A stretch of 64,000 nt of DNA from Entomortierella parvispora E1425 (Eukaryota > Fungi > Mortierellomycota), in NCBI GenBank assembly GCA_020891255.1, contig BQFW01000005.1, positions 310,001 through 374,000 of the forward strand, in the 5' to 3' direction. Of this stretch, positions 1 through 35,660 are shown piece after piece. The translations under genes were made by a program, and so were the position numbers. The notes beneath the pieces are model-generated. The model saw only the letters and a list, made by a program, of their open reading frames with translations, ran no database searches and was not told the DNA's origin. Within the stretch, counting starts at the first letter, position 1. The number at the start of each line of letters is the position of its first letter.

Positions 1-1841
1 GCCACACCGATCTTGTGCGCCGTATTGGAGACATCCAGGCTTCTCAATTTCTTAAGTCCCGCCAATTCATCCAGGCCAGATGCGAGCGAAAGGGAAATGC
101 ATTGAAGCTGTTCTGGCTGCGGAGCTGCAGAAGAGATTGCCCTGTTCCTCCCCGGCATACGGGTGATTGGGGACTCCTTACTGCGGGGACCATGTCCAAG
201 GCAGAGCTCCTTGAGCGAGGTGAGCTGCCCCAGTTGGCCGTATATCCTTTGGATCTCATCTGTCGCGTCATCCTCTTCGTGCGAGACCAAGGCGCTGACG
301 ACAGTCGAGCCACTTCTTAGGCGAGTAGTCCAACCAACGAGATCTGATCGCGGGATCCCTCCGATATTAATTGCAAGGGACTCGAGCTCCAAGCATGCCC
401 ATGACGACGGGGCACCAACATCAGAGTTCAAAGGCGCTGCAGCCTCGCTCTTGACTGGCGCAGCTTGGCCATCGCTCGCCTGGATTGTCTCTCCGGTCCC
501 CTGAGCCACGACAGCGCTCTCCACGATGGGATCAAACAATCCACCAAAGTCCATGGGCTGATACCGGATGTGATGAGCCGCGATTGACAAGTCGAACTCT
601 TGAACAAGCGGACGGGAGAAGGTCAAGCCGCTCAACATCTTGAGGTTCTCTGCAGCAACTAAAAAGTCCTGCAAGAACTCCCCATCGAAACCGGAGACTC
701 CCTCGACCACCAAACTCTCGAGCATTGGCGCGCCACTGAGAAGAAACGACCTTGTGCGGCCCCCAATCGTTCCTGACGGCGACAGGGAGAGGTGCTGCAA
801 CATCACCCCCTCCAGAAAAAGGCCGGCGATTTCGTCTGTCACTGCCGGGACGTCATAACAGAGTTCCTTGAGACTCTTCAGTTGAGTGCTGACAATCGAG
901 CTCATACGAGTTGGTGCCACTGACCAGGCAAGATTGCGATGGATCTCAAGCGTTTGGAGGTTTGGGCAGCGTTGTAGGAAGGCCACCAAAAGTTCCTCTG
1001 CGACCAAACCACTTACAGAAAAGTGCCCCAAAGACGGCAGAACAGGTACTGAGTCGTGAACACTAAACATCCAGTGTTGCACATTCGCTGACCAGTTGAC
1101 CACGTCGAAGTCCACGAAAAGGGACTGAAGTGCCCGTGACTGGATCCAGAACAAAGCACAGCTTAATCTAGGATCACTTGCCATAGCAGGGTGCAGCCTC
1201 CCAACGCCAGAGAGAGATAGGTGCCTTAGTCCACCTGCTCGACGAACGACCTCCAAGATGGTATCCAGCTCCGATGACACCAGAGGCTGAACTCGAGGAA
1301 AGGCTAAATGAACCGATTTCAACTTTTGCATCGCTCTTTCGGTTCGACCAGAGAGCAACATCTGGCCGTGGACCACTCCTTGCGAACTCTCGAACGATCT
1401 CAGTTGGTCCAAGGAGGCTTGGAAGGCTAACTGGGAAGAGGCTCGGAGGAAACGTCGGCATTGGACAGGCGAATACAGGCGAACGTCGCTCCAAAGTTCT
1501 CGAGTCCACATTCCGTTCCACTGCAGAGAGACCCTGCAACACCTGGCAATGCTCGCATGCCCAAGGTAGGTTGCAATCGTAGGGGTAATCTCTGGAGGCA
1601 AGTAGTTCCAGGAGGTGATGCGAGGCGCGGGGACGAGGGCGAAAGAAAGGACAGGAGAAGGCTCCTGTTGGACTGTGTGTTCAACGACAGTCTGAACTCG
1701 CTCGCGTGTGAGTTGCTGCTCCCAAACAGATCTCCATGTTCTCGACACCAATTTACAGTTGAGTTTATCCTCCTTGGAGAGATAAATGCAAATGAAAGAA
1801 ACAACCTCAGGCCAAAGAAGATCCCAAGAACTGTTGGTCAT
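1..1841 (-). CDS. Tandem F-box / LRR-like protein (copy A), 3' end runs off the window
   Basis: Manual translation from ATG at 1841 (MTNSSWDLLWPEVVSFICIYLSKEDKLNCKLVSRTW...WNYLPPEITPTIATYLGHASIARCCRVSLQW...) is open to base 1. It has two F-box-like motifs followed by LxxLxL repeats and is paralogous to 28620-30635. It is missing from the ORF track because there is no stop inside the window. Confidence 0.85.
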   Translation of the reverse strand, partial: MTNSSWDLLWPEVVSFICIYLSKEDKLNCKLVSRTWRSVWEQQLTRERVQTVVEHTVQQEPSPVLSFALVPAPRITSWNYLPPEITPTIATYLGHASIARCCRVSLQWNGMWTRELWSDVRLYSPVQCRRFLRASSQLAFQASLDQLRSFESSQGVVHGQMLLSGRTERAMQKLKSVHLAFPRVQPLVSSELDTILEVVRRAGGLRHLSLSGVGRLHPAMASDPRLSCALFWIQSRALQSLFVDFDVVNWSANVQHWMFSVHDSVPVLPSLGHFSVSGLVAEELLVAFLQRCPNLQTLEIHRNLAWSVAPTRMSSIVSTQLKSLKELCYDVPAVTDEIAGLFLEGVMLQHLSLSPSGTIGGRTRSFLLSGAPMLESLVVEGVSGFDGEFLQDFLVAAENLKMLSGLTFSRPLVQEFDLSIAAHHIRYQPMDFGGLFDPIVESAVVAQGTGETIQASDGQAAPVKSEAAAPLNSDVGAPSSWACLELESLAINIGGIPRSDLVGWTTRLRSGSTVVSALVSHEEDDATDEIQRIYGQLGQLTSLKELCLGHGPRSKESPITRMPGRNRAISSAAPQPEQLQCISLSLASGLDELAGLKKLRSLDVSNTAHKIGV

Positions 1842-2213
1842 AGCTGTAACGAGAGTGGTTGGTGGACGTTGTTATTATTGTCTTTAGAGAAGATACTATA
1901 GAGTAAGTTCACTTGGAGACTTGATCCAGGTCAGAGAAGACAGAGTGGGCCAGGCGGGAGAACAAGCGAGAGAAACGGGCGAAGCGCGGTGGCAAATTCA
2001 GAGCGGCAGAGACGGCGCGAGTCGTATCGAGGGGGGGTTCCTTCTCTTGAGGAATCAACAATCAGACAGACAGACAGACAAGCAATCAGACAAGCAATCA
2101 GACCAATCAGGCAATGAGTCTTCACGTTGATGCAAATGCACGCGTGCAATGAAGAAGAGAGATTGCTGATGAGTGAATCCCTTTTCCCAGCGGCACCCCT
2201 TTTATATTTTATA

Positions 2214-3080
2214 TTTACATACGGCCCGCACGCGTCAACGGACAATGGACGTTCTCAATGGACATTCCGCGCACATACCCCTTCAAAGAACAGTCACCTC
2301 TGGCGCAGCACTTGAGCCACCCATGTACCATAAAACACATGTCCTTCTGTCATTCCCTCTTGCTCATCAACCAAACCCTTCCGAATGAACTGCACTACTT
2401 TTGGACGCCTACAACGCAACGACTCCTTAGTACTTCGATCTGGCGGAAACCACTCTCACTTCGATCCCGATCCGGCAACACTACTATTATCACTCTCAAA
2501 GACATGCCTTTCTGCTGGTTTGCTTTTTTTTTTGCTGCTGTTTTTTGCTGTTTTTGCTGTTTTTGCTGTCGTTGCTTGTTGTTGGATGTTGGTTGGATGT
2601 TGGTTGGTGTTTATGGTCGGTGTGGGTTGTGGGTTGTGGGTTGTGGGTTGTGGGTTGTTGGCTGTTGGTTGTGGGTTGGTTGGTGTGTTGGTGTGTTGGT
2701 GTGTTGGTGTGTTGGTGCGTTGGTTGTTGGTTGTTATTTGTTCTTTCTTTCGTTTCTCCCCCATGTCTTGCTCTCAGGTCGACCGCTGCCCTCTTACACC
2801 CCCGCCCCCAGTCAGCGAAGGACGACCTGCGTCGTAGGTGCCCCCCTATCTGAATTTATTCTAGTCGCTGCTCGAAGAGGTGGGCGTGTAGGGGAACTAC
2901 TTCAGGCGTCGCTGGGTTAACTTATCGGGATGTGTCTTCGACCTGACCGGCACCCAAGGTAAGTCAAGGTAAGTGGGGTGCGATGGCCTGCCGCCTGCTC
3001 GTTGGCGTGCCCTGCACAACCTGTTCACCTCTCTTTATTCAAACAGAGGCGACAGTTGACTGAGAGCAGGCCCAAATAGA
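2214..3080 (+). repeat. Direct repeat A1 (LTR-like, ~0.87 kb) with GT-rich microsatellite core and 3' ribozyme-like end
   Basis: Near-identical to 6072-6887, 31009-31840 and 34827-35660. All four begin near TTTACA and end at GCAGGCCCA(G/A)ATAGA. Confidence 0.9.
2975..3072 (+). ncRNA. HDV-like self-cleaving ribozyme candidate (A1)
   Basis: P1 GGGGTGC/GTGCCCT with G1.U wobble; P2 GGCCTGC/GCAGGCC; P3 GCC/GGC; L3 TGCTCGTT; P1.1 GC/GC; P4 hairpin; J4/2 ACTGA with putative catalytic C3060. Confidence 0.7.
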
Positions 3081-3176
3081 AATTGTTTTTCTTATGGCGA
3101 ACCAAATAAATATGATATAACTCAACCATTCTCTCCCTCCCCCTCTCCCTCTCCCTGGGTACTGGCCCGCCATGAT

Positions 3177-3614
3177 GTGGTTGGCGTTCAATTTGCTGGA
3201 AATCTGGGGTGTCGGTCGGTTGCGAAATCGGGAACCCCTTCAACGACGAATTACAACGATTTGCCCTTGGATGATTTCTGCAAGGTTATCCAAGCAGAAG
3301 TCAAGTCGCTGGTGGCCACCCGTTTGCCTGTCCCATCTGACTGGATCTTTTCCTACAGCAACTACCCTCTTTCCAACTCGAGATTGCCGGCCAAGGAGCT
3401 CTTGGCCCTGTCACTGGAAAAAGTCCATGGGTTGATGGCACAGGAGAACCAGGGAATATCTTCAAAGATGCAGTACTCAAGACCTGTGCCTGGCAACAAC
3501 AGTGGATGCGTGGGCTATCTAGAGCCTGGTTCTCTCACCCACAGGGCCTCCCACATCGTCCAGTGCCTCGACCAAAGTCAACAGCAACAAGACCTTCGTC
3601 TAAAAAAACTGTGA
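3177..3614 (+). pseudogene. Decayed ORF of unknown function inside element A
   Basis: Coding-like stretch (NDLPLDDFCKVIQAEVKSLVATRLP...). The homologues at ~31990-32368 and ~28090-28240 differ by indels and stops. Confidence 0.35.
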
Positions 3615-3897
3615 TGAATGCCTTCTTTTATGATCGAGAGGCTGGTCCTTCCTTCTCTTTCCCGTCTGAACTCCAATAAATCGAGTCGACTCTACAAAAC
3701 AAACAAAGACCCCTCCCAGCATTCCAAAGATAATAATAAAAACGCCTGACATTCATCACCTCACTGCATCCTCGCTCTTCTATCGGAGGACTCAGTCCAG
3801 TCGAGTAGCCGTCGAGGATCGTTCAAGAGCTCATAATTGGTCTTTCATTGCCATTAAAGTCATGCTTGACAATTATATCACTTTATTGGCAGTAGCT

Positions 3898-3974
3898 GGG
3901 GTGAGATGGTCTGCCGCCTGATCGCTGGGGCGCCTTTCCCTTCGAGAAGAGAGAGGGTTGACTGAGAGCAGGCC
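3898..3974 (+). ncRNA. Divergent internal HDV-like ribozyme candidate (A-int)
   Basis: Same register as A1, with L3 TGATCGCT and P1.1 GA/TC (compensatory change), P2 GGTCTGC/GCAGGCC, a shorter P4, and J4/2 ACTGA. P3 and P1 each have a terminal mismatch. Confidence 0.5.
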
Positions 3975-6071
3975 CAAAGAGTCATAGATTCCTTTGTAGT
4001 AACATGAACAAAGAATGATCGAGCTTCAACAGCGTTTCCACTTTGTCATGTAAATCCGGGTTTCCTGACTTTGATCGCGATTCGTAGACAATCCTTTGAA
4101 CGACCAGCGCGGCTCATTTCGAATCCGTGAAAGTTTTTACTTTTGGTCTCTTGCCAAATGTGGATCGGCAAAATGGCTCACCAAATGCTCTGTGGAATGC
4201 CCAACGTGGAAGGATTTTGTGGCCATGGCGCTCAGGGACAAGGAGACGGTAGAGGATCGTTGGTTGGGTGCTGGCGCGGATTTCGAGGAACTCATTTCCG
4301 GGATTTGGTTGACGAGGTTTTCAGTGAATCTTCTTGTTTCAGCTTTGGCCGTCAAAAGGTCCTTGGTACGAGAAGGCCTATTAGTTGTCAATGAAAAAAA
4401 GGTGGATTTAGCCGCATTGACAACAACCCCAGCCCATGGAGGCTGGAGCAGGAGGGGGGGAGATGAAAGGAATAGACCGGATTGCTGACTGCTGGGAGTG
4501 ACTTGAGAGGCAGCGCAACACAAGATTCTCACCCCCGACACAAGAGCGTGCTCCTGTCCATCCCCGACAGAAACAAAACTCGAGCATCTTGACCCCAAAC
4601 ATATCCCAGATAACGCACTAACGACAAAGGTACTGCTCCCTACTCGCAAGCAAGTAGAGAAAAGAGGCTCAGCTACACGGCCTCACAGCACTCGCTTTGC
4701 CCTCATAGCCGGTCCGAACCACCTTCCTTCTTATCCAACGACGTGCCAAGAATAACAGACCCATCCTGCTCCGTGAACACGACAGAAGGACTCCAAACGA
4801 AAGCCGATGGAACTCCGTAAATGAGAATATGCCCAGAAGACAACGCTGGTCCACACACATCCTCACCGACTTGCGACCTCCCCAAACACCTTGCGGCAAG
4901 ATCACAACCCAGTGAGAGAAGAACGGGGGAACATGACATACGAACGAAACAAAATAAATAGAAACGCGTCTGCCGCTGACCGAAGGTTGAGTACCCCTCC
5001 AACACCTCCAAGCGGGAATCCTCAATGACGGGTTGCTGGTTAAAGCAACGCGTTGAAGTCAACTCTTCCCTAAAGCGGTACAAAGTCTCCTTGACCTCAA
5101 CTCCTCCTTTTCGCTGGTCTTGACAAGAACCAAGAGAATTCAATGGAGGCCCTTCATTCCATGTCCAGAGTCATGCAGGCAAGAAAATGTAAACAGTGTT
5201 CACATGGACCCGGGTGAGGAACGCCACCTGCACTCCCAAGCCCCGACACAGCCATTACTTCTGTTTTCCGCCTGCCAAAGAGACATTCAGGGGGCAATGC
5301 CTCTCATTCTGCGCTTGGAACGTCGTTGAAGCGGTTGAAATGACCAGTCCTTCCCTGTTACATACCCCTTCAATGGCGATTGCGCACAATACCGCAGCCG
5401 GTTTGCAGCTCCCCGGAGTAGCTGCCTCTCAGCAATAAACACGATACTTACCTGCCCGGGTATCCCACGGCGGCAACGTGGCGGAGTAGGTGGCCCATGG
5501 TGGGCGAAAGGCGAGGAGCAGTGGCCCTCGCGTGCGCGCGTCGTTTTGGGCCAACTTCAAGAATACAAGCCACCGAGAATGAAAGTGTCACGTGCGTCGT
5601 CCCTTTCGTTCGAATTTCTCTTCTGATGAGATGAAAGGACAGCATGGAGTCCGATGATGTCCTCGCTCGGAGCACTTCGCTCATGATTTTTTGCAACACG
5701 CACCGGGGAGCGAATCCCCGGCGAGCACGACCTAGAGACGCAGCAATTACGACTGATGAAGAATACTACCTGAAATCGCCTTTGCTACAGAATAATACCT
5801 GAAGTCGCATTTGCTACAGAGCAGCAAGTGCGATGAAGGTAGGTGTCAACTCGGGGCGAGAGGAGTCGTTTTTTCATTTCGCGAACAACGAGAATGGCGA
5901 CCAGAATGTGATGCCGCCCATCATGATGCCAAAAATCGCGTGTGGGGTATGTCAATTCGATCTGATACAGGATATTTGTCATGATCGAGGATTCCCCCCC
6001 GGTTTTGACTGGCGCGAATTGACTATCGCTGGCCTGGCTTGACTCCCCGATCTCCTGCTTCCACGACAGCC

Positions 6072-6887
6072 TTTACATGCACCCGACGCGTCAATGGACG
6101 TTCTCAATGGACATTCCGCGCACACGCCCCTTCAAAGAACAGTCACCTCTGGCGCAGCACTTGAGCCACCCATGTACCATAAAGCACATGTCCTTCCGTC
6201 ATTCTCTCTTGTTCATCAACCAAACCCTTCCGAATGAACTGCACTACTTTTGGACTCCTACAACGCAACGACTCCTTAGTACTTCGATCTGGCGGAAACC
6301 ACTCTCACTTCGATCCTGATCCGGCGACACTGAAATCTATTACTCTCAAAGACATGACTTTCTGCTAGTTTGCTTTTTCTTGCTGCTGTTTTTGATGTTT
6401 TTGCTGTCGTTGCTTGGTTGGATGTTGGTTGGTGTTTATGGTCGGTGTGGGTTGTGGGTTGTGGGTTGGTTGGTGTGTTGGTGTGTTGGTGTGTTGGTGC
6501 GTTGGTTTGTTGATTGTTGTTTTTGGTTGTTGTTGGTTGTTGGTTGTTGGTTGTTGTTTCTTTCGTTTCTCCCCCATGTCTTGCTCTCAGGTCGACCGCT
6601 GCCCTCTTACCCCCCCGCCCCCAGTCAGCGAAGGACGACCTGCGTCGTAGGTGGCCCCCTATCTGAATTTATTCTAGTCGCCGGAAGTGGGCGTGTAGGG
6701 AAACTACTTCAGGCGTCGCTGGGTTAACTTACCGGGATGTGTCTTCGACCTGACCGGCACCCAAGGTAAGTCAAGGTAAGTGGGGTGCGATGGCCTGCCG
6801 CCTGCTCGTTGGCGTGCCCTGCACAACTTGTCTACCTCTCTTTATTCAAAGAGAGGCGACAGTTGACTGAGAGCAGGCCCAGATAGA
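6072..6887 (+). repeat. Direct repeat A2
   Basis: Second repeat of element A. It ends at CCCAGATAGA, followed by unique sequence. Confidence 0.9.
6782..6879 (+). ncRNA. HDV-like ribozyme candidate (A2)
   Basis: Core identical to A1. P4 contains a perfect CCTCTCTTT-ATTC-AAAGAGAGG stem. Putative catalytic C6867. Confidence 0.72.
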
Positions 6888-7171
6888 GCTCGATTATATT
6901 GTCACCGAATCAGCCTTGCCTTCCTGTTGTCTTTTGTCCTTCTTCTAGATCTCTGTCGTATAAAACAACAACAAATGAATGGATATTTATTATGACTTGC
7001 ATGAAAAATAAAAGAGAGAAAGGAAAAAAACTAGTGAACAGAACAGGAGGGGGCAGACTTGTCTCTTATTCTTTTTAGAAACAGGTAGGCAGGCCTTGGG
7101 CCTGGGGGTATTCAAAGAAAAAAGACGGAAGAATGGAAAGAACAGGAAAGAAAGAGCACCATAAAGATCCC

Positions 7172-9436
7172 TTACAAATCATTGGCCTCGAGCCAAGACT
7201 TGCGTCCCATGGGTCGACGGACTGGTGGCAAAGGAGGTTGTTCCTCCCATTCGGAGGCAGAGTCCATTGCCATCTCTGAGGGACGAGCACGCTTATAGTA
7301 GCGCGACGAAGTTGAGAATGAACCGTTTTCCAGAGCTGGAGCGTCATTCACCAAATCTTGGGCCTGCTGATGGTGATCGAGCTTTTCGCGCAACATTTGG
7401 GACTCGTGTTGTTCCTGAATCTCTTGCAGCTTTTGTTCCAAAGAAATGGAGGTGGTGGAAGGGGGCGTGTAGGCTAGGTCCTTGGCGCGCTGACGTTCAA
7501 TCTCGGCCCGGACTCGGTTTTGTTGTTGAGAGCTGTGGTTATCAGATGAAGACGAAGCGATCTCACGAGAGATGCGGCGCATGGGCGCAGGCACGGCAAT
7601 AGGGCGTTTAGAAGGCGAGACCATGGTAAGGGCGATCGAGCTCTGGGTGGTGGTAGAGGTGGGTCGTTGGATGGATCGCCGTTGTTCAAAGTTGGCAAGT
7701 CGTTGTTGAGGCGTCAAAGGTTTTCTGGCGGACAAGGGTGCTGCAAGACGATGGTGTTGGGGCTCAATAGGATGACCATAGCCATCGACTTCATGATGAT
7801 CCTCCAGTCCGCTTTCTTCAGCCTCTGTGCGTGAGTCGTATGCAGAGTGATAGGATCTGGTACCGTAGCCCGCACCTTCCATGCGCTTGCGTTTCTCGCC
7901 AATGTTGGGCGAATGGGGTGTTGTGAGTGGTTTTGTTGATTTATGAATCTCAATCGGGCTGTAGTGTCTGATCGGCGTCAACTTGACTACGGTCTGTTGA
8001 CGCAGGCGTCTAATCTCCTGCAGTTCTCTCAACTAGATGAAAATAAAAAGATGGCAAAAAAGAGATTAATACTCATTTTCTTGCCCTTTCTCTTGTTCAT
8101 AAAGCCTTTTCATCCCAATGAACCCTCTCGGACGAAAGACGATCAGTACCCTCTGCGTAGCACTCTTCAGTGTTACCTCGTCCTCTCGTGCTTTGGCCGC
8201 TTTGATGTCCTCCAAAACGAGCTCCTTCTGTCTCCTTTCCTGTTCATAGTGTTCTCTTTCCTCTGCTCTTTTGTCTGTCTGCAACACAATCTGAGCTGAA
8301 CATGTCAAAGGTTTCGTTGACTTTTTCGGAACAAACAGCGGAGCGCGATGGGCAGGAAGAGGAAGGGCCTTGAATTGGTGCTCTTTCTCAATCTGTTTCC
8401 ACTTGACCAGCTTGTTCTTGAACTGTTCCTGGTGCCGTTCTCCTCGACTTTGTGTCCTGAGATTAAAAGGCTGAGGAACCGTCAATTTGGGCTTTGTGAC
8501 AGGGGCATGATGAACATGAGCATGGTGTTGCGGCCTCGCTGCCGCGGCTCGTTGAGATGAGGCGACAGTTGCGCCTGTGGCAGGTCGGATACGGATAGGG
8601 CCTGCACCACCTCTTGAAAGTTGTGTGGCCCTAGAGGACAAAGTACTTGCTGTCGTCGAGTGCAACGATGCCTTGTCTTTACTCAATCGCCTGGCCGACT
8701 CTGCTGAATTAATCAGTCCTCGCTCTGTAATCCCTGAGCGATAGCTCCTGTACTGTGTCTGTGGTTGCTGCGAAGGGATGCGGGGCCGAGCAATTGGGTG
8801 TGCGCCAAAAGATGTTCCTTTATATGGGTGATAACTGCTTGAATTTGAGGTGGTTGTGGGTCCAGAATGAATAGCGCGAATCCTGGGTTTGCTGAGTTGA
8901 GGTGACTTTGGTACTGTGAGGGGTCTCTTTGCCACCTTTGGGATCCCGGCAGCTCCAGCTCGTTCGACGACCTAAGAAATAATCATCCCATATGGTTTCA
9001 TATACTGGTTAGGATAACAAGACTACAGAAAGAGAAGTAAACATGACGACTCTGGGTGCGTTATTCCCACTGTCCTTACCCTGTGGTTGCCGATAGTGCC
9101 GTTCCTTCCGCGCTGGGTCATATCCTGCAAGATGCGAGTCTCGTATGAGTGAGCGCTGTTGTTGGCTTGTGGGTGCTTGCAGTTGCAGCTGGCAGAGAGG
9201 CCTTCGGTCGTTCCAGAGGGCACGGTCTGTTCCTGGGCAGCTTCGTCCGAGGTGTCGATGACGCTCTCGAGGTCGTGATTAGGGTGGCTGTTATGGGCTG
9301 GGTATTCGTCGTGCTCAAGGTGGTCGTGGTGATGATGGTGATGGAGAGGAGGAGGGAGAGGGGGATTGAGCTCGTGCTGGTCGTGGTGGAGCGGATGAGG
9401 ATCTGGATGGTAATGGGATGTGTGAGAGAGAATCAT
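7172..9436 (-). CDS. TPX2/WVD2-like microtubule-associated protein (spliced)
   Basis: KLTVPQPFNLRT, FKALPLP, KKSTKPLT and ELQEIRRLRQQTVVKLTPIRHY...KSTKPLTTPHSP match the TPX2 C-terminal motifs. GT-AG introns join the three ORFs in frame. Confidence 0.75.
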
Positions 9437-26270: not shown

Positions 26271-27460
26271 CTAACAATAGGCCTCCTGCAATTTGGTGCA
26301 TTCCCTCCGCCAGGGTGTTACGACTTGGCCATTCATAGTCTTGGATGGCTTCAGAATGAAGTAGTAGAGCCTGCGGCCTATATTGACCGGTGAACCCAGC
26401 CTTTTGCCAGTCATCAGGCCAGTTTCTCGGCGGAAAGGGACGGACCATGTAACGAACTCGAGTGTAGGCCACCGATTGACAAGCCGATAGTGCAAGTCTA
26501 CGCGGTAGTACTCACTTACGAGCGAGCTCCAGACTAGAGCCCGGGTTCTGAGGCAGCCATTGTGATTGTTGTTGCTGCTGCTGTCGTTGTCACTGTCACT
26601 GCGGCTGCAGTTACTGCTGTTGAAATAGTGGCTATTGTTGACGTGGCTGTTGCTCTGGTTGTTGCCGCTGATTCTGACGTCTCTGTTACTGCTTCCCGAA
26701 CCCAGAGACAGTGAGAGTCTATGGATAAGTGAAGGCGTCTATTCTTGCTCTCTGGATCTCAAACGTTTGAAGATTTGTTTGCGAGGAGGCCCGCTGAAAA
26801 CGTCGGCACTTGTGAGTCGAATAAAGGCGGGAGGGTGCAGCCTCCCAATGTCAGAGAGAGATAGGTGCCTTAGTCCACCTCCCCGACGAACGACCTGCAA
26901 GATGGTATGCAGCTCCGATGACACCAGAGGCTGAACTCGAGGAAAGGTGAAATGAACCGATTCCAACTTTTGCCTCGCTCTTTCGGTTCGACCGGCGAGC
27001 AACATCTGGCTGTGGACCACTCCTTGCGAACTCTCGAACGATCTCAGTCCCTCCAGGGAGGCTTGGAAGGCTAACTGGGAAGAGGCTCGGAGGAAACGTC
27101 TGCATTGGTCAGCGTCGAATACAGGCGAACGTCGCTCCAGCGTTCCCGAGACCACATTCCGTTCCACTGAAAAGACACCTTGCAACACCTGGCAATGCTT
27201 GCATGCCCAAGGTATGTTACGATCGCTGTGGCAATCTTTGGAGGCAAGTAATTTCAGGATGTGATTCGAGGGGCTGGGACGGGGGCGAGGAATATGGTAG
27301 GAGAAGGCACCTGTTGGACTGTATTTGCAGTGACGGTCTGCGCTCGTTCACGCGTTAGCGGTCCCAAACCGACCTCAAGGCCCTTGACACCACTGTACTG
27401 TACATATGAGTTTATCTTTCCTTAGAGAGATGAACACAAATCAACTGAATTGACTTCCAG
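26271..27460 (-). pseudogene. Truncated, frameshifted third F-box/LRR paralogue fused to unrelated sequence
   Basis: 27460-26835 is homologous to the 5' part of copies A and B, with a +2 nt frameshift at ~27110. Homology stops after LRHLSLSDIGRLHP. An in-frame TAG lies at 26739. Confidence 0.75.
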
Positions 27461-28619: not shown

Positions 28620-30635
28620 TCATGGGAGAGAGGGAAACGCCGAGCCGACTCCATGAGGATGCCTGGCCATCCATGCCTTGACCTCGTGAAGGATCTCTCC
28701 TTGCCACTTGTCCGGCACTGAAAATCCGACGCGATCGTAAAGGCCCACGATGGTGCGTAACACCGGCCAGTTCTCCCGCATCCATTCGAGTTCCAGCACA
28801 CCAATCTTGTGGGCCATCTTAGAGACATCTAAGACCCTCAGCCTCTTCAAGCCTGCCAGTTCATCTAGACCAGACGAGAGAGACATCGAGATGCAGTGGA
28901 GTTGTTCAGGCTGTGGAGCTCCAGAAGAAATCGACCTGTTGTCTCGTGGCATGCGAGTTATGGTAGACACCCTGCTGGAGGGGCCATATCCAAGGCAAAG
29001 CTCTTTGAGCGAAGTAAGTTGCCCCAATTGACCGTAAACCCTTTGTATCTCGTTTGTTGCCTCGTCTTCTTGGTGTGAGACAAGGGAATTGGTGCTGTCT
29101 GAACCATTGCTTGGGCTAGCGATCCAATCGATAAGGTCTGAGCGCGGGATCCCCCCGATATTGATTGCAAGAGACTCGAGTCCCAAGCATGACCAAGACG
29201 ACGGGGCATCATCACCGGGGTTCAAAGGCGCTTCAGGTTCGGTCTTGACTGGCGCAACTTGACCGTCGCTCGCTTGGCTTGTCTCCCCGATCTCCTGCTC
29301 TACGACAGCGCTCTCCACTACGGGATCAAACAATCCACCAAAATCCATCGGCTCATATTGGATATGATGAGCAGCTATTTCCAGGTCGAACTGTTGAACA
29401 AGCGGACGAGAGAAGGTCAGGCCGCTCAACACCTTAAGATTTTCTGCCGCAACTAGAAGCTCCTGGAGGAACTCTCCGCTAAAACCGACGATGCCCTCCA
29501 CCACCAAGGCCTCCAATATCGACGCGCCACCAAGAAGAAGGGATCGCGTGAGGTTACCAATAGATCCAGACGGTGACAGAGAGAGGTGCTGAAACTTCAC
29601 TCCTTCTAGGAAAAGGCCCAAGATGTTGTCGGTGACCCTCGGGACGTCGTAAGTAAAACTTTTGAGACTTGGTAACTGGGTGCGGACAACCGAGCTCAGG
29701 CGAGTTGGTGCCATTGACCAGGCACGATGCCGATGGATCTCAAGCACTTTAAGGTTTGGGCAGCGTTGTAGGAAGGCCACCAAAAGTTCCTCGGGAACCA
29801 GCCCACTCACGGAGAAATGCTCCAGTACTGGCAGAGTAGGCAACACATCGTTGGGCACAGATCCCCAGCCCCGTCCGTTCTCAACATAGCCGAGTACATC
29901 GAAGTCCACAAATAAGGACCGGAGAACACCAGATTCAATCCAAAAGATGGTGCAAGTGGATCTAGGGTCGTTACCCTGCATAGGACTCAGTCTCCTAATT
30001 CCAGACAGAGACAGATGCCTGAGTGCACCAGCCCGACGCACGACCTCCAAGATAGTCTCCAGTTCGGATGCCACCAGAACTTGGACTTGAGGAAAGGCCA
30101 AATGAACCGATTCCAACATTCGCATCGTTCCTTCGGCTCGACCAGAGAGCAGGATCTGACCGTGGGCCAGCCCTTGAGAACTCTCAAGAGATTTCAGTTG
30201 GTCCAAGGAGGCTTGGAAGATTAGCTGGGAAGACGCGCGGAGGAAACGTCGGCACTGGACAGGCGAATACAGACGTACGTTTCTCCAAAGTTCTCGGGAC
30301 CATACTCCGCTCCACTGCAGAGAGACCCTGCAACACCTGGCTATACTTGCATGGCCAAGATATCCTGCTATCGTCGGGGCAATCTCCGGAGGCAAGTAGT
30401 TCCAAGACGTGATACGAGGGGCGGGGACGAGGGCGAAAGAAAGCACAGGAGAAGGCTCCTGTTGGACTGTGTGTTCAACGACAGTCTGAACTCGCTCGCG
30501 TGTGAGTTGCTGCTCCCAAACAGATCTCCATGTTCTCGACACCAATTTGCAGTTCAGTTTGTCTTCCCTGGAGAGATAAACACAAATGAGAGAAGCAACT
30601 TCAGGCCAAAGTAGATCCCAAGAACTGTTGGTCAT
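28620..30635 (-). CDS. Tandem F-box / LRR-like protein (copy B), intronless
   Basis: Long ORF with two F-box-like motifs (WDLLWPEVASLICVYLSREDKLNCKLVSRTW; WNYLPPEIAPTIAGYL..ARCCRVSLQW) and LRR-like repeats. First ATG at 30635; the ORF track starts at a GTG. Confidence 0.9.
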   Translation of the reverse strand: MTNSSWDLLWPEVASLICVYLSREDKLNCKLVSRTWRSVWEQQLTRERVQTVVEHTVQQEPSPVLSFALVPAPRITSWNYLPPEIAPTIAGYLGHASIARCCRVSLQWSGVWSRELWRNVRLYSPVQCRRFLRASSQLIFQASLDQLKSLESSQGLAHGQILLSGRAEGTMRMLESVHLAFPQVQVLVASELETILEVVRRAGALRHLSLSGIRRLSPMQGNDPRSTCTIFWIESGVLRSLFVDFDVLGYVENGRGWGSVPNDVLPTLPVLEHFSVSGLVPEELLVAFLQRCPNLKVLEIHRHRAWSMAPTRLSSVVRTQLPSLKSFTYDVPRVTDNILGLFLEGVKFQHLSLSPSGSIGNLTRSLLLGGASILEALVVEGIVGFSGEFLQELLVAAENLKVLSGLTFSRPLVQQFDLEIAAHHIQYEPMDFGGLFDPVVESAVVEQEIGETSQASDGQVAPVKTEPEAPLNPGDDAPSSWSCLGLESLAINIGGIPRSDLIDWIASPSNGSDSTNSLVSHQEDEATNEIQRVYGQLGQLTSLKELCLGYGPSSRVSTITRMPRDNRSISSGAPQPEQLHCISMSLSSGLDELAGLKRLRVLDVSKMAHKIGVLELEWMRENWPVLRTIVGLYDRVGFSVPDKWQGEILHEVKAWMARHPHGVGSAFPSLP

Positions 30636-31008
30636 AGCTGTAACGAGAGGTGGTTGGTGGACGTTGTTATTATTGTCTTTAGAGAAGATACTATAGAGTA
30701 GGTTCACTTGGAGACTTGATCCGGGTCAGAGAGGACAAAGTGGGCCAGGCGGGAGAACAAGCGAGAGAAACGGGCGAAGCCCGGTGGCAAATTCAGAGCG
30801 GCAGAGACGGCGCGAGTCGTATCGAGGGGGGGTTCCTTCTCTTGAGGAATCAACAATCAGACAGACAGACAGACAAGCAATCAGACAAGCAATCAGACCA
30901 ATCAGGCAATGAGTCTTCACGTTGATGCAATGCACGCGTGCAATGAAGAAGAGAGATTGCTGATGAGTGAATCCCCTTTCCCAGCGGCACCCCTTTTATA
31001 TTTTATAT

Positions 31009-31840
31009 TTTACATGCACCCCGCACGCGTCAACGGACAATGGACGTTCTCAATATTGTCGCGCACATACCCCTTCAAAAAACAGTCACCTCTGCCGCAG
31101 CACTTGAGCCACCCATGTACCATAAAGCACATGTCCTTCCGTCATTCCCTCTTGCTCATCAACCAAACCCTTCCGAATGAACTGCACTACTTTTGGACGC
31201 CTACAACGCAACGACTCCTTAGTACTTCGATCTGGCGGAAACCACTCTCACTTCGATCCCGATCCGGCAACACTACTATCTATTACTCTCAAAGACATGC
31301 CTTTCTGCTGGCTTGCTTTTTCTTGCTGCTGTTTTTGCTGTTTTTGCTGGTTTTTGCTTGTTGTTGGATGTTGGTTGGTGTTTATGGTCGGTGTGGGTTG
31401 TGGGTTGTGGGTTGTGGGTGGCGGGTTGTGGGTTGTGGGTTGTTGGTTGTTGGTTGTGGGTTGGTTGTGGGTTGGTTGTGGGTTGGTTGTTGGTTGTTAT
31501 TTGTTGTTTCTTTCGTTTCTCCCCCATGTCTTGCTCTCAGGTCGACCGCTGCCCTCTTACAACCCCGCCCCCAGTTAGCGAAGGACGACCTGTGTGTGGG
31601 TGAGCCCCTATCTGAATTTATTCTAGTCGCTGCTCGAAGAGGGGGGTGAGTAGGGGAACCACAGAGGCGTCGCTGGGTTAACTTATCGGGAATGTGTCTT
31701 CGACCTGACCGGCACCCAAGGTAAGTCAAGGTAAGTGGGGTGCGATGGCCTGCCGCCTGCTCGTTGGCGTCCCCTGCACAACTCGCTTATTTCTCTTTTC
31801 GAAGAGAGATGACAGTTGACTGAGAGCAGGCCCAGATAGA
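31009..31840 (+). repeat. Direct repeat B1
   Basis: Same repeat family as A1 and A2. Confidence 0.9.
31737..31832 (+). ncRNA. HDV-like ribozyme candidate (B1)
   Basis: Same core. P1 3' strand GTCCCCT gives one mismatch. P4 variant with a TTCG loop. Putative catalytic C31820. Confidence 0.62.
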
Positions 31841-32651
31841 AACTGGGTTTTTTTATGGCGAACCAAATAAATATGATGTAACTCAACCATTCTCTCCCTC
31901 CCCCTCTCCCTCTCCCTGGGTACTGGCCCGCCATGATGTAGTTGGCGTTCAATTTGCTGGGAATCTTGGGTTTCGGTCGGTTGCGAAATCGGGAACCCCT
32001 TCAACGACGAATTGCAACGATTTGCCCTTGGATGATTTCTGCAAGGTTATCCAAGCAGAAGTCAAGTCGCTGGTAGCCACCCGTTTGCCTGTCCCATCTG
32101 ACTGGATCTTTTCCTGTAGCAACTACCCTCTTTCCAGCCGAGATTGCCAGCCAAGGAGCTCTTGGCCCTGTCACTGGAAAAAGCCCACGAGTTGATGGCT
32201 CAGGATAGCCAGGGAATATCTTCAAGATGCTCAAGACCTGTGCCTGGCAACAACAGTGGATGCGTGGGCTATCTGGTGCCTGGTTCCATCACCCACAGGG
32301 CCTTCCACGTCGTACAGTGCATTGACCAAGGTCAACAGCAGCAAGACCTTCGTCTAAAAAAACTGTGATGAATGCATTCTTTTATGATCAACAGGCTTTG
32401 GTCCTTCCTTCTCTTCCATCTGAACTTCAAGAAATCGAGTCGACTCTACAAAACAAGCAAAGACCCCTCCCAGCATTCCAAAGATAATAATAAAAACGCC
32501 TGACATTCATCACCTCACTGCATCCTCGCTCTTCCATCGGAGGACTCAGTCCAGTCGGGTAGCCGTCGAGGATCGTTCAAGAGCTCATAATTGGTCTTTC
32601 ATTGCCATTAAAGTCATGCTTGACAACTATATCACTTTATTGGCAGTAGCT

Positions 32652-32728
32652 GGGGTGAGATGGTCTGCCGCCTGATCGCTGGGGCGCCTTTCCCTTTGAG
32701 AAGAGAGAGGGTTGACTGAGAGCAGGCC
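32652..32728 (+). ncRNA. Divergent internal HDV-like ribozyme candidate (B-int)
   Basis: Counterpart of 3898-3974 with the GA/TC P1.1 variant. Confidence 0.5.
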
Positions 32729-34826
32729 CAAAGAGTCATAGATTCCTTTGTAGTAACATGAACAAAGAATGATCGAGCTTCAACAGCGTTTCCACTTTGT
32801 CATGTAAATCCGGGTTTCCTGACTTTGATCGCGATTCGTAGACAATCCTTTGAACGACCAGCGCGGCTCATTTCGAATCCGTGAAACTTCTTACTTTTGG
32901 TCTCTTGCCAAATGTTGATCGGCAAAATGGCTCACTAAATGCTCTGTGGAATGCCCAACTTGGAAGGATTTTGTGGCCATGGCGCTCAGGGACAAGGAGA
33001 CGGTAGAGGATCGTTGGTTGGGTGCTGGCGCGGATTTCGAGGAACTCATTTCCGGGATTTGGTTGACGAGATTTTCAGTGAATCTTCTTGTTTCAGCTTT
33101 GGCCGTCAAAAGGTCCTTGGTACGAGAAGGCCTATTAGTTGTCAATGAAAAAAAGGTGGATTTAGCCGCATTGACAACAACCCCAGCCCATGGAGGCTGG
33201 AGCAGGAGGGGGGGAGATGAAAGGAATAGACCGGATTGCTGACTGCTGGGAGTGACTTGAGAGGCAGCGCAACACAAGATTCTCACCCCCGACACAAGAG
33301 CGTGCTCCTGTCCATCCCCGACAGAAACAAAACTCGAGCATCTCGACCCCAAACATATCCCAGATAACGTACTAACGACAAAGGTACTGCTCCCTACTCG
33401 CAAGCAAGTAGAGAAAAGAGGCTCAGCTACACGGCCTCACAGCACTCGCTTTGCCCTCATAGCCGGTCCGAACCACCTTCCTTCTTATCCAACGACGTGC
33501 CAAGAATAACAGACCCATCCTGCTCCGTGAACACGACAGAAGGACTCCAAACGAAAGCCGATGGAACTCCGTAAATGAGAATATGCCCAGAAGACAACGC
33601 TGGTCCACACACATCCTCACCGACTTGCGACCTCCCCAAACACCTTGCGGCAAGATCACAACCCAGTGAGAGAAGAACGGGGGAACATGGCATACAAAAG
33701 AAACAAAAATAAATAGAAACGCGTCTGCCGCTGACCGAAGGTTGAGTACCCCTCCAACACCTCCAAGCGGGAATCCTCAATGACGGGTTGCTGGTTAAAG
33801 CAACGCGTTGAAGTCAACTCTTCCCTAAAGCGGTACAAAGTCTCCTTGACCTCAACTCCTCCTTTTCGCTGGTCTTGACAAGAACCAAGAGAATTCAATG
33901 GAGGCCCTTCATTCCATGTCCAGAGTCATGCAAGCAAGAAAATGTAAACAGAGTTCACATGGACCCGGGTGAGGAACGCCACCTGCACTCCCAAGCCCCG
34001 ACACAGCCATTACTTCTGTTTTCCGCCTGCCAAAGAGACATTCAGGGGGCAATGCCTCTCATTCTGCGCTTGGAACGTCGTTGAAGCGGTTGAAATGACC
34101 AGTCCTTCCCTGTTACATACCCCTTCAATGGCGATTGCGCACAATACCGCAGCCGGTTTGCAGCTCCCCGGAGTAGCTGCCTCTCAGCAATAAACACGAT
34201 ACTTACCTGCCCGGGTATCCCACGGCGGCAAAGTGGCGGAGTAGGTGGCCCATGGTGGGCGAAAGGGGAGGAGCAGTGGCCCTCGCGTGGGCGCGTCGTT
34301 TTGGGCCAACTTCAAGAATACAAGCCATCGAGAATGAAATTGTCACGTGCGTCGTCCCTTTTTCGTTTTCTCTTCTGATGAAATGATGAAAGGACAGCAT
34401 GGAGTCCGATGATGTCCTCGCTCGGAGCACTTCGCTCATGATTTTTTGCAACGCGCACCGGGGAGCGAGTCCCCGGCGAGCACGACCTGGAGACGCAGCA
34501 ATTACGACTGATGAAGAATACTACCTGAAATCGCCTTTGCTACAGAATAATACCTGAAGTCGCATTTGCTACAGAGCAGCAAGTGCGATCAAGGTAGGTG
34601 TCAACTCGTGGCGAGAGGAGTCTTTTTTTCATTTCGCGAACAACGAGAATGGCGACCAGAATGTGATGCCGCCCATCATGATGCCAAAAATCGCGTGTGG
34701 GGTATGTCAATTCGATCTGATACAGGATATTTGTCATGATCGAGGATTCCCCCCCGGTTTTGACTGGCGCGACTTGACTATCGCTGGCCTGCCTTGTCTC
34801 CCCGATCTCCTGCTTCCACGACAGCC

Positions 34827-35660
34827 TTTACAAACACCCGACGCGTCAATGGACGTTCTCAATGGACATTCCGCGCACACGCCCCTTCAAAGAACAGTCA
34901 CCTCTGGCGCAGCACTTGAGCCACCCATGTACCATAAAGCACATGTCCTTCTGTCATTCCCTCTTGCTCATCAACCAAACCCTTCCGAATGAACTGCACT
35001 ACTTTTGGACGCCTACAACGCAACGACTCCTTAGTACTTCGATCTGGCGGAAACCACTCTCACTTCGATCCTGATCCAGCGACACTACTATCTATTACTC
35101 TCAAAGACATGCCTTTCTGCTGGTTTGCTTTTTCTTGCTGCTGTTTTTGCTGTTTTTGCTGTCGTTGCTTGGTTGGATGTTGGTTGGTGTTTATGGTCGG
35201 TGTGGGTTGTGGGTTGTGGGTTGTGGGTTGGTTGGTGTGTTGGTGTGTTGGTGTGTTGGTTTGTTGGCTGTTGTTTTTGGTCGTTGGTTGTGTTGGTTGT
35301 TGGTTGTTGGTTGTTGGTTGTTGGTTGTTTCTTTCGTTTCTCCCCCATGTCTTGCTCTCAGGTCGACCGCTGCCCTCTTACCCCCCCGCCCCCAGTTAGC
35401 GAAGGACGACCTGTGTGTGGGTGAGCCCCTATCTGAATTTATTCTAGTCGCTGCACGAAGAAGTGGGTGAGTAGGGGAACCACAGAGGCGTCGCTGGGTT
35501 AACTTATCGGGATGTGTCTTCGACCTGACCGGCACTCAAGGTAAGTCAAGGTAAGTGGGGTGCGATGGCCTGCCGCCTGCTCGTTGGCGTGCCCTGCACA
35601 ACTTGTCTATTTCTCTTTTCGAAGAGAGATGACAGTTGACTGAGAGCAGGCCCAGATAGA
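34827..35660 (+). repeat. Direct repeat B2
   Basis: Ends at CCCAGATAGA, followed by unique sequence. Confidence 0.9.
35557..35652 (+). ncRNA. HDV-like ribozyme candidate (B2)
   Basis: Full core as in A2. P4 is TGTC-T-ATTTCTCTT-TTCG-AAGAGAGAT-GACA. Putative catalytic C35640. Confidence 0.72.

Follow-up and report, generated by a model that had tools for sequence, protein, structure and literature searches.

Between positions 2214 and 6887 of the window (the whole 64-kb stretch of Entomortierella parvispora DNA analysed here), two direct repeats enclose a spacer of about 3 kb, and each repeat ends in a motif with the fold of a self-cleaving ribozyme of the hepatitis delta virus (HDV)-like, or delta, type. 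A preliminary description had taken this arrangement for a retrozyme, a discrete element resembling a long terminal repeat (LTR) retroelement that would yield a circularisable RNA of 3.8 kb. The direct repeats it reported were recovered with about 90% identity (89.9% between 2243-3080 and 6092-6887 when the window was compared with itself by BLAST), and alignment of the repeat starts placed their shared left edge at about 2214 and 6063, at the letters TTTACAT. The whole unit (copy A) recurs at 31009-35660 (copy B), as described, and the copy B repeats (31038-31840 and 34847-35660) are 93.2% identical in the same self-comparison. This recurrence lies inside a longer match of 90.8% identity over 6.9 kb, pairing 3-6887 with 28797-35660, and homology between the two copies thus continues for some 2.2 kb beyond the left edge of the left repeat. 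A covariance model identified six ribozymes in the window, all on the plus strand, with E values from 1e-13 to 4e-21. Those in the repeats end 8 nt short of the repeat ends, in agreement with the earlier placement, and the distances between their first nucleotides (G1) are likewise the expected 6782-2975 = 3807 nt in copy A and 35557-31737 = 3820 nt in copy B. Coordinates of all features are collected in Table 1.

The identity of the motif as a genuine HDV-like ribozyme fold, on the same strand in both repeats, is well supported by pairing counts, covariation and the covariance model, and here the preliminary description holds. HDV-like ribozymes adopt a nested double pseudoknot made of P1, P2, P4, a P3 of 3 bp and a P1.1 of 1-2 bp, and cleavage takes place at the base of P1 (PMC3185411, PMC5640933). 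We mapped this fold on the aligned sequences of 33 distinct genome copies, which also served to build the covariance model. It consists of a P1 of 7 bp with a G1-U pair, a J1/2 with the sequence GAU, a P2 of 7 bp followed by one unpaired C, a P3 of 3 bp, an L3 of 8 nt, a P1.1 of 2 bp, a variable P4 and finally J4/2. Over the 24 pairs of P1, P2, P3, P1.1 and the base of P4, 97.6% of cells (a cell being one copy at one pair) were paired, as against only 31-42% when the 3' partners were slid by 1-3 columns. Compensatory double changes occurred at five pairs, namely C-G to U-A in P2 (4 copies), C-G to A-U in P1.1 of the internal copies, and three pairs in the basal part of P4. Not one shuffle out of 500 attained the observed values, and P4 formed a single hairpin in 33/33 copies despite their unrelated sequences (mean z of -3.9).

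Patterns of sequence conservation follow the same architecture. Between families, conservation starts exactly at GGGG (G1), whatever the sequence upstream, extends over the core, skips the variable hairpin and resumes in TGAC.GAGAG and CAGGCC. Loop L3 and the TGAC.GAGAG of J4/2 are invariant or nearly so in the alignment, and both the C of TGAC and the G1-U pair are present in 33/33 copies. The J4/2 cytosine serves as general acid in HDV-like ribozymes, and many of them have a G-U wobble where cleavage occurs; the invariant C is therefore the candidate catalytic residue. The G-U pairs of P1 make the fold possible on the plus strand only. When the window and 20 loci were searched at gathering threshold, the HDV-type models of Rfam (HDV_ribozyme, CPEB3 and the drz-* models) gave no match, and positions 1-8000 gave none even at E <= 10. 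Such a result does not exclude the fold, because Rfam covariance models cannot represent pseudoknots and its HDV-type models appear to be lineage-specific.

Table 1. Features of the ribozyme-bearing locus and of its second copy, in window coordinates.
Feature	Position	Strand	Remarks
Degenerate F-box/LRR-family paralogue	1-1865	-	left flank of left repeat; tblastn
Left direct repeat	2214-3080	+	non-coding T/G-rich body with GTTGG-type microsatellite, tandem 5'-splice-site-like leader, ribozyme
Ribozyme 1	2975-3072	+	covariance model, 95 bits; predicted cleavage 5' of G2975; candidate catalytic C3060
Spacer	3081-6062		about 3 kb; mosaic of repeated pieces rather than a single unit
AATAAA poly(A) signal	3105-3110	+	33 nt past ribozyme 1
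Ribozyme 2, internal	3898-3974	+	covariance model, 65.5 bits; divergent, short P4
LRR-family pseudogene fragment	4195-4383	+	inside spacer; tblastn
Right direct repeat	6063-6887	+	5'-shortened second copy of the repeat unit, without F-box flank
Ribozyme 3	6782-6879	+	covariance model, 101 bits; candidate catalytic C6867
Third, partial F-box paralogue	26832-27441	-	upstream of copy B; tblastn 27367->26832
Copy B of the 6.9-kb block	28797-35660	+	F-box paralogue, repeat, spacer, repeat
Copy B ribozymes	31737-31832, 32652-32728, 35557-35652	+	covariance model
Copy B AATAAA	35678-35683

The ribozyme is widespread in the genome. A 24-nt core pattern (<=2 mismatches) matched 58 places, and a variant pattern with AAAGG in J1/2 matched 13 further places; together these matches are spread over 16 contigs. 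The reversed control gave 0, and the matches thus exceed chance. The genome consequently holds at least 71 ribozyme copies, which fall into at least eight flank families. When the repeat was compared with the genome by BLAST, more than 35 short matches were limited to about 100 nt from G2975. Decayed copies with a mutated core also exist. This ribozyme is also found on 13 contigs that come from two related metagenome samples; leader classes and tails are the same there, and the repeat bodies are 63-80% alike. Among the loci compared, no neighbouring genes were seen to be common to the metagenome contigs and this genome.

Several arrangements of copies are worth recording. The subfamily with AAAGG in place of GATGG before P2 (13 copies) is more dispersed than the others. 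Three members lie on the minus strand of contig C13 (1768276, 1775219 and 1782061) at 6.9-kb spacing, and the remaining 10 are on C2, C6, C7, C9, C10 and C15. A same-strand ribozyme pair 3.9 kb apart, belonging to a different flank family, occurs at C14:308158 and 312081 (plus strand). In a related organism, the metagenome contig Ga0302182_10008755 carries a head-to-tail dimer of a ribozyme-bearing unit of about 1.2 kb (locus L086, 1532-3892), with a period of 1192-1247 nt and units that are about 84% alike. Over the whole genome, neighbouring ribozyme pairs are inverted as often as tandem.

The copies share a fixed context that extends beyond the ribozyme. We examined 45 distinct copies, including those of the metagenome. 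An AATAAA hexamer lies no more than 70 nt downstream of the ribozyme in 41 of these 45, mostly at +17 to +43, as compared with 2.5% of random 70-nt windows from the same loci. This coupling was seen across at least 10 families with unrelated flanks, although copies within a family are related and the counts are not fully independent. A TAG follows within 17 nt in 37/45 copies, with a YAG found 8-12 nt past the ribozyme. Upstream, leaders of 9-30 nt are conserved next to the cleavage site and are of two types, either AAGGTAAGT/AAGGTAGGT abutting G1 (26 of the 45 copies, often doubled) or ATTATT. The leader AAGGTAAGT, present in one clade, is perfectly complementary to U1 and abuts the cleavage site. 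Pairing between leader and tail was no better than in shuffled sequences. Two inverted copies on C7, 40 kb apart (L078, C7:2608578; L079, C7:2649143), carry in addition a run of 20-21 T about 20 nt past the ribozyme, before AATAAA.

Homology within families is strongly polarised, extending 0.5-1.8 kb upstream of G1 and only 0-430 nt past the ribozyme; the 5' extents of flank families vary and their 3' end is common. Family b, with seven copies on C2 and C4, forms a sharp 1.3-kb unit (-555 to +740 from G1) that ends in a poly(A) tract (at least 20 A in four copies) followed by unrelated flanks, and its 3' half is found only in its 7 copies. One metagenome family shows A-runs of 4-14 directly after AATAAA.

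Neither the unit nor the repeat bodies have coding capacity. The statement of the preliminary description that the unit lacks reverse transcriptase (RT), integrase and gag genes stood up to a Pfam search, which was blank for every open reading frame (ORF) of the unit, including the 220-aa ORF of the left repeat and those of the spacer. The bodies of other repeats gave no Pfam match either, and their translated cross-species matches fall in all six frames; long open frames on the plus strand are explained by its T-rich composition. Neither tRNA heads nor other Rfam families were found in the bodies. No Pfam RT or transposase was detected in the unit or in ORFs flanking 39 genome and 13 metagenome copies, and just one of the genome's 150 RT places has a ribozyme within 6 kb. 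The neighbouring ORFs belong to assorted host genes (hydrolases, WD40, GH85, FAA hydrolase, F-box). A T/G-rich, microsatellite-like tract is present in each repeat of the locus (2520-2740 and 6380-6560), with GCTGTTTTT followed by GTTGG/GTGGGTT units; it accounts for most length differences between copies and for long spurious ORFs on the plus strand.

The spacer gives piecewise matches on C14, C1, C7, C12 and C5, and its first 240-680 nt or so are common to other C5 copies. Inside it are a piece of a pseudogene, a dispersed repeat, and a further repeat family that bears a ribozyme of its own. The internal ribozyme has a compensatory A-U in P1.1 and mismatches at the ends of P3 and P1, and degenerate relatives of it occur on C1 and C14. 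The pseudogene piece matches residues 316-378 of a 457-aa ORF at locus L034 (38% identity, E 4e-7, tblastn). At 5796-5900 (spacer 2716-2820) lies a dispersed repeat of about 100 nt that is distinct from the ribozyme and has at least seven matches of 79-84% identity on C1, C3, C7 and C13.

The left flank of the left repeat belongs to a gene family. An F-box-like ORF at locus L065 (Pfam PF12937, E 3e-6) matches the window from 1688 to 1167 (tblastn, E 8e-28), an LRR-like ORF at L078 matches it from 428 to 6, and the same matches recur in copy B. The third, partial F-box paralogue upstream of copy B marks the area as a tandem or segmental gene-family cluster. This fast-evolving F-box/LRR-like family (in the window at 1-1865, 26832-27441 and 28755-30605; elsewhere at L034, L065, L078 and L012) repeatedly adjoins ribozyme units in divergent, convergent or tandem orientation. 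Its intact members of 391-457 aa are on C1, C7 and C12, and its Pfam support is weak (F-box-like, E 3e-6; LRR family, E 1e-4).

The duplication history of the locus can be read from these flanks. Segment 1-2242 is present four times in the genome, always on C5 and always directly followed by the repeat, and the left edge of the repeat is therefore not an insertion edge. The repeat itself has seven copies, all on C5, four of them with the same F-box flank; the 3-kb interior is found in A and B only. Sliding identity between A and B is 70-85% over 1-1600, rises to 92-100% from about 1600 to 6880, and collapses 8 nt past the right ribozyme. A recent duplication or conversion tract thus begins about 600 bp before the repeat, and not at the repeat edge or at G1, which led us to reject the movement of a ribozyme-delimited unit between A and B. 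Copies A and B form a single tract of duplication or gene conversion. As far as DNA goes, this is what the preliminary description had itself named, together with a lack of unit-length or circular RNA, as grounds for refuting the retrozyme.

We therefore favour, with moderate confidence, a reading of the locus as a duplication-prone F-box/LRR cluster that carries three members of a non-coding ribozyme-repeat family, rather than as one mobile element. The best-supported view is that the window contains six members, copy B included, of a family of non-coding repeats found throughout the genome. Each of them ends in a cassette composed of a conserved leader, the HDV-like ribozyme, a YAG 8-12 nt further on, and AATAAA 20-45 nt past the ribozyme. 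The left 'LTR' would be the 3' part of such a unit lying divergently beside an F-box paralogue, the right 'LTR' a second copy of it that is shortened at its 5' end, and the spacer a ribozyme unit of another family together with gene debris; segmental duplication or gene conversion would have produced one of copies A and B from the other. Each unit is presumably transcribed by RNA polymerase II. The ribozyme is predicted to fold into its nested double pseudoknot and to cut just 5' of G1. The RNA upstream of the cut would be released with a 2',3'-cyclic phosphate, and what remains would be a tail of about 130-150 nt that starts with the ribozyme, carries a 5'-OH and extends as far as the poly(A) site. 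Read-through of unit A would give an RNA with cuts at 2975, 3898 and 6782, and with them fragments of 923 nt and 2884 nt. The family has probably spread by retroposition of uncleaved polyadenylated transcripts combined with local DNA duplication.

The retrozyme reading, in which 2214-6887 would be released by double cleavage, circularised by a host ligase and copied by a helper RT, with homologous recombination at a solo repeat as a possible route of entry, has to be compared with elements of known structure. Plant LTR retrozymes have LTRs of 300-400 bp around non-coding interiors of 300-600 bp, with 4-bp target-site duplications (TSDs), a tRNA-Met primer-binding site and a polypurine tract (PPT), and they occur as tens of dispersed copies plus solo LTRs and as abundant circular RNAs of 600-1000 nt (Cervera et al. 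2016, PMC4918200). The locus resembles them in having direct repeats, each with a same-strand ribozyme, around a non-coding interior, and double cleavage can be predicted from this layout; the ribozymes are however of HDV type and not hammerheads. In addition, the right edges of the repeat and of the A/B homology both fall at the ribozyme end, other same-strand pairs exist at similar spacing (C14:308158/312081) along with the metagenome tandem dimer, and an absent TSD would be expected if a circle had integrated at a solo repeat. Against these points, no TSD was found at 2214/6887 or at 31009/35660, and the outer edges show no 4-bp duplication (TATTTTATA ... GCTCGATT in copy A, TTTTATAT ... 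TGACCAAT in copy B). There is no PPT before the right repeat, the sequence before 6063 being pyrimidine-rich. After 3080 only a TGGCGAACC stretch was seen and no tRNA-type primer-binding site was recognised, as judged without the tRNA set of the genome. Of the LTR hallmarks, TG..CA ends are missing as well. Furthermore, the genome holds two full units only, both from one duplication, which share 2.2 kb of left flank and whose high-identity tract starts at about 1600. The interior is a 3-kb mosaic with a gene fragment, far above the 0.3-0.6 kb of known interiors (PMC4918200), and neighbouring ribozyme pairs are, genome-wide, inverted as often as tandem. The predicted chemistry of the ends, 5'-OH and 2',3'-cyclic phosphate, can be kept for any transcript that crosses the locus, but the single 3.8-kb product is not supported, since the third ribozyme at 3898, if active, would split a read-through RNA into 923 + 2884 nt instead of 3807 nt. 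On this evidence a discrete LTR-like retrozyme at this locus is improbable. A more general notion of non-autonomous ribozyme-bearing repeats in this lineage, genome-wide, is plausible. Animal non-LTR retrozymes (Cervera and de la Pena 2020, PMC7229834) are similarly non-autonomous, non-coding and ribozyme-bearing, lack LTR hallmarks, and offer a parallel for the occasional tandem arrangement (e.g., L086, with its period of 1192 nt). They form short tandem arrays of units of about 150-400 bp (PMC4918200) with type I hammerheads, in contrast to the units described here, which measure 0.6-3 kb, are mostly solitary or inverted, and carry HDV-type ribozymes and poly(A) signals.

A different possibility is that the cassettes are host features, either 3' ends of a family of non-polyadenylated non-coding RNAs or terminators of divergent or intergenic transcription near fast-evolving genes, copied by segmental duplication only; MALAT1-type RNAs, which RNase P cuts ahead of their poly(A) site, would provide an analogy. 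The near-invariant core, set in P4 and flanks that have diverged beyond recognition within and between species, bears the signature of purifying selection at many loci, and the strict coupling to AATAAA, the conserved leaders of 9-30 nt (by which the released 3' end may matter), the clustering of families on single contigs beside F-box/LRR paralogues, and the lack of a nearby RT all accord with such a function. However, family b and the clade II family of the metagenome end in poly(A) tracts with unrelated flanks, the combination of variable 5' extents with shared 3' ends is typical of retroposed copies, no neighbouring genes are common to the metagenome contigs and the loci compared, and some copies have decayed cores. 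We regard this explanation as unlikely. Less probable still, and in our view very improbable, is that the clade I ribozyme sits inside a short spliceosomal intron of introner type, in which splicing would compete with self-cleavage. Its elements would be the GTAAGT right before G1, a branch-point-like CTGAC/TTGAC stretch in J4/2, and the YAG 8-12 nt on. A GT[AC][AG]G[TC] abuts G1 in 26/45 distinct copies, often after AAG, TAG follows within 17 nt in 37/45, and the resulting span of about 105-115 nt is compatible with the size range of fungal introns. Clade II nevertheless has no upstream 5' splice site, only the ATTATT leader; the units lack flanking exons or ORFs; their flanks are homologous within families, unlike those of solitary introners; and the branch-point-like letters are the invariant catalytic strand, which makes a second explanation unnecessary.

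Returning to the favoured reading, of a repeat family spread by retroposition and local duplication, a number of observations weigh against it. Family b has no TSDs of 8 nt or more, and clear poly(A) tails are confined to family b, the clade II family of the metagenome and one C11 copy. Most families are limited to one contig, which fits DNA-level duplication better than retroposition, and poly(A)-dependent retroposition would lose its template if the ribozyme, which separates body from poly(A) tail, cleaves efficiently. Same-strand tandem pairs elsewhere (3.9 kb on C14, 1.19 kb in L086) may leave room for a unit-length product. Finally, the repeat and the A/B homology both end exactly 8 nt past the ribozyme, at the YAG, a coincidence that plain segmental duplication leaves unexplained and that hints at a copying mechanism tied to the 3' end of the ribozyme. 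Spread as a LINE-dependent retroposon is favoured by the poly(A) ends, the 5' truncations and the absence of shared neighbours; a role as a host device for 3'-end formation and termination, multiplied by DNA duplication alone, is favoured by the strong purifying selection that the core shows across many diverged loci, by the conserved leaders and by the clustering of families on single contigs. Either of the two may hold.

HDV-like ribozymes of comparable kind have been described in other genomic contexts. Li and Breaker (2017) reported 230 variant HDV ribozymes from 26 species of fungi, together with a demonstration of their self-cleavage (PMC5640933); as far as the species list of the class was seen, it consists of Ascomycota, and Mortierella is named only under group I introns. 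Like those variants, the ribozymes described here form the nested double pseudoknot, have an extra nucleotide between P2 and P3 (an unpaired C at column 19 in 33/33 copies), possess a long J4/2 where U-R-A-G-A stands between the presumed catalytic C and P2', occur in many copies per genome with variable gene neighbours, and are missed by standard searches (in this case Rfam). They differ in having G1-U at the cleavage site in all copies instead of the typical C-G, and a regular, covarying helix at the base of P4 without the AGUA/GAA pattern of a P4 that is partly loop-E. They also come from a different phylum, as far as that species list goes, and show a coupling to AATAAA and conserved leaders that were not described there. 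Self-cleavage was demonstrated for those variants, whereas here it is predicted from sequence.

A second comparison is with the HDV-like ribozymes that head the non-LTR retrotransposons R2, L1Tc and RTE (PMC3185411; reviewed in PMC7761336). Both groups belong to the same class, reside in repeated DNA and would be co-transcribed with upstream sequence, which may in both cases modulate cleavage. In R2, L1Tc and RTE the ribozyme heads an RT-encoding element and homology extends downstream; in the repeats described here no RT is within reach, homology extends upstream, and the ribozyme lies near the 3' end, before a poly(A) signal. A literature search yielded no paper that connects Mucoromycota or Mortierella with self-cleaving ribozymes. 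It is possible, and we put it forward only tentatively, that the Mortierellaceae cassette of leader, variant HDV-type ribozyme and poly(A) signal is undescribed and represents either new HDV-ribozyme non-autonomous retroposons or a self-cleaving 3'-end or termination module, and that fragments released from tandem copies (at this locus, on C14 and in L086) may circularise.

The value of the locus itself is mainly corrective, in that a convincing ribozyme-bearing layout of 'LTR - interior - LTR' can stem from duplication within a gene cluster. The family has a wider meaning. HDV-like ribozymes were already known at the 5' ends of autonomous retrotransposons and as scattered variants in Ascomycota. 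In this early-diverging fungus, at least 70 well-conserved copies occur in a fixed and different context, where they close non-coding repeats at the 3' end, with a poly(A) signal directly behind them and often a consensus 5' splice site right in front. Such a layout makes the role of genomic HDV-type ribozymes directly testable, with 3'-end formation, termination, competition with U1 or the spliceosome, and retroposition as candidate roles.

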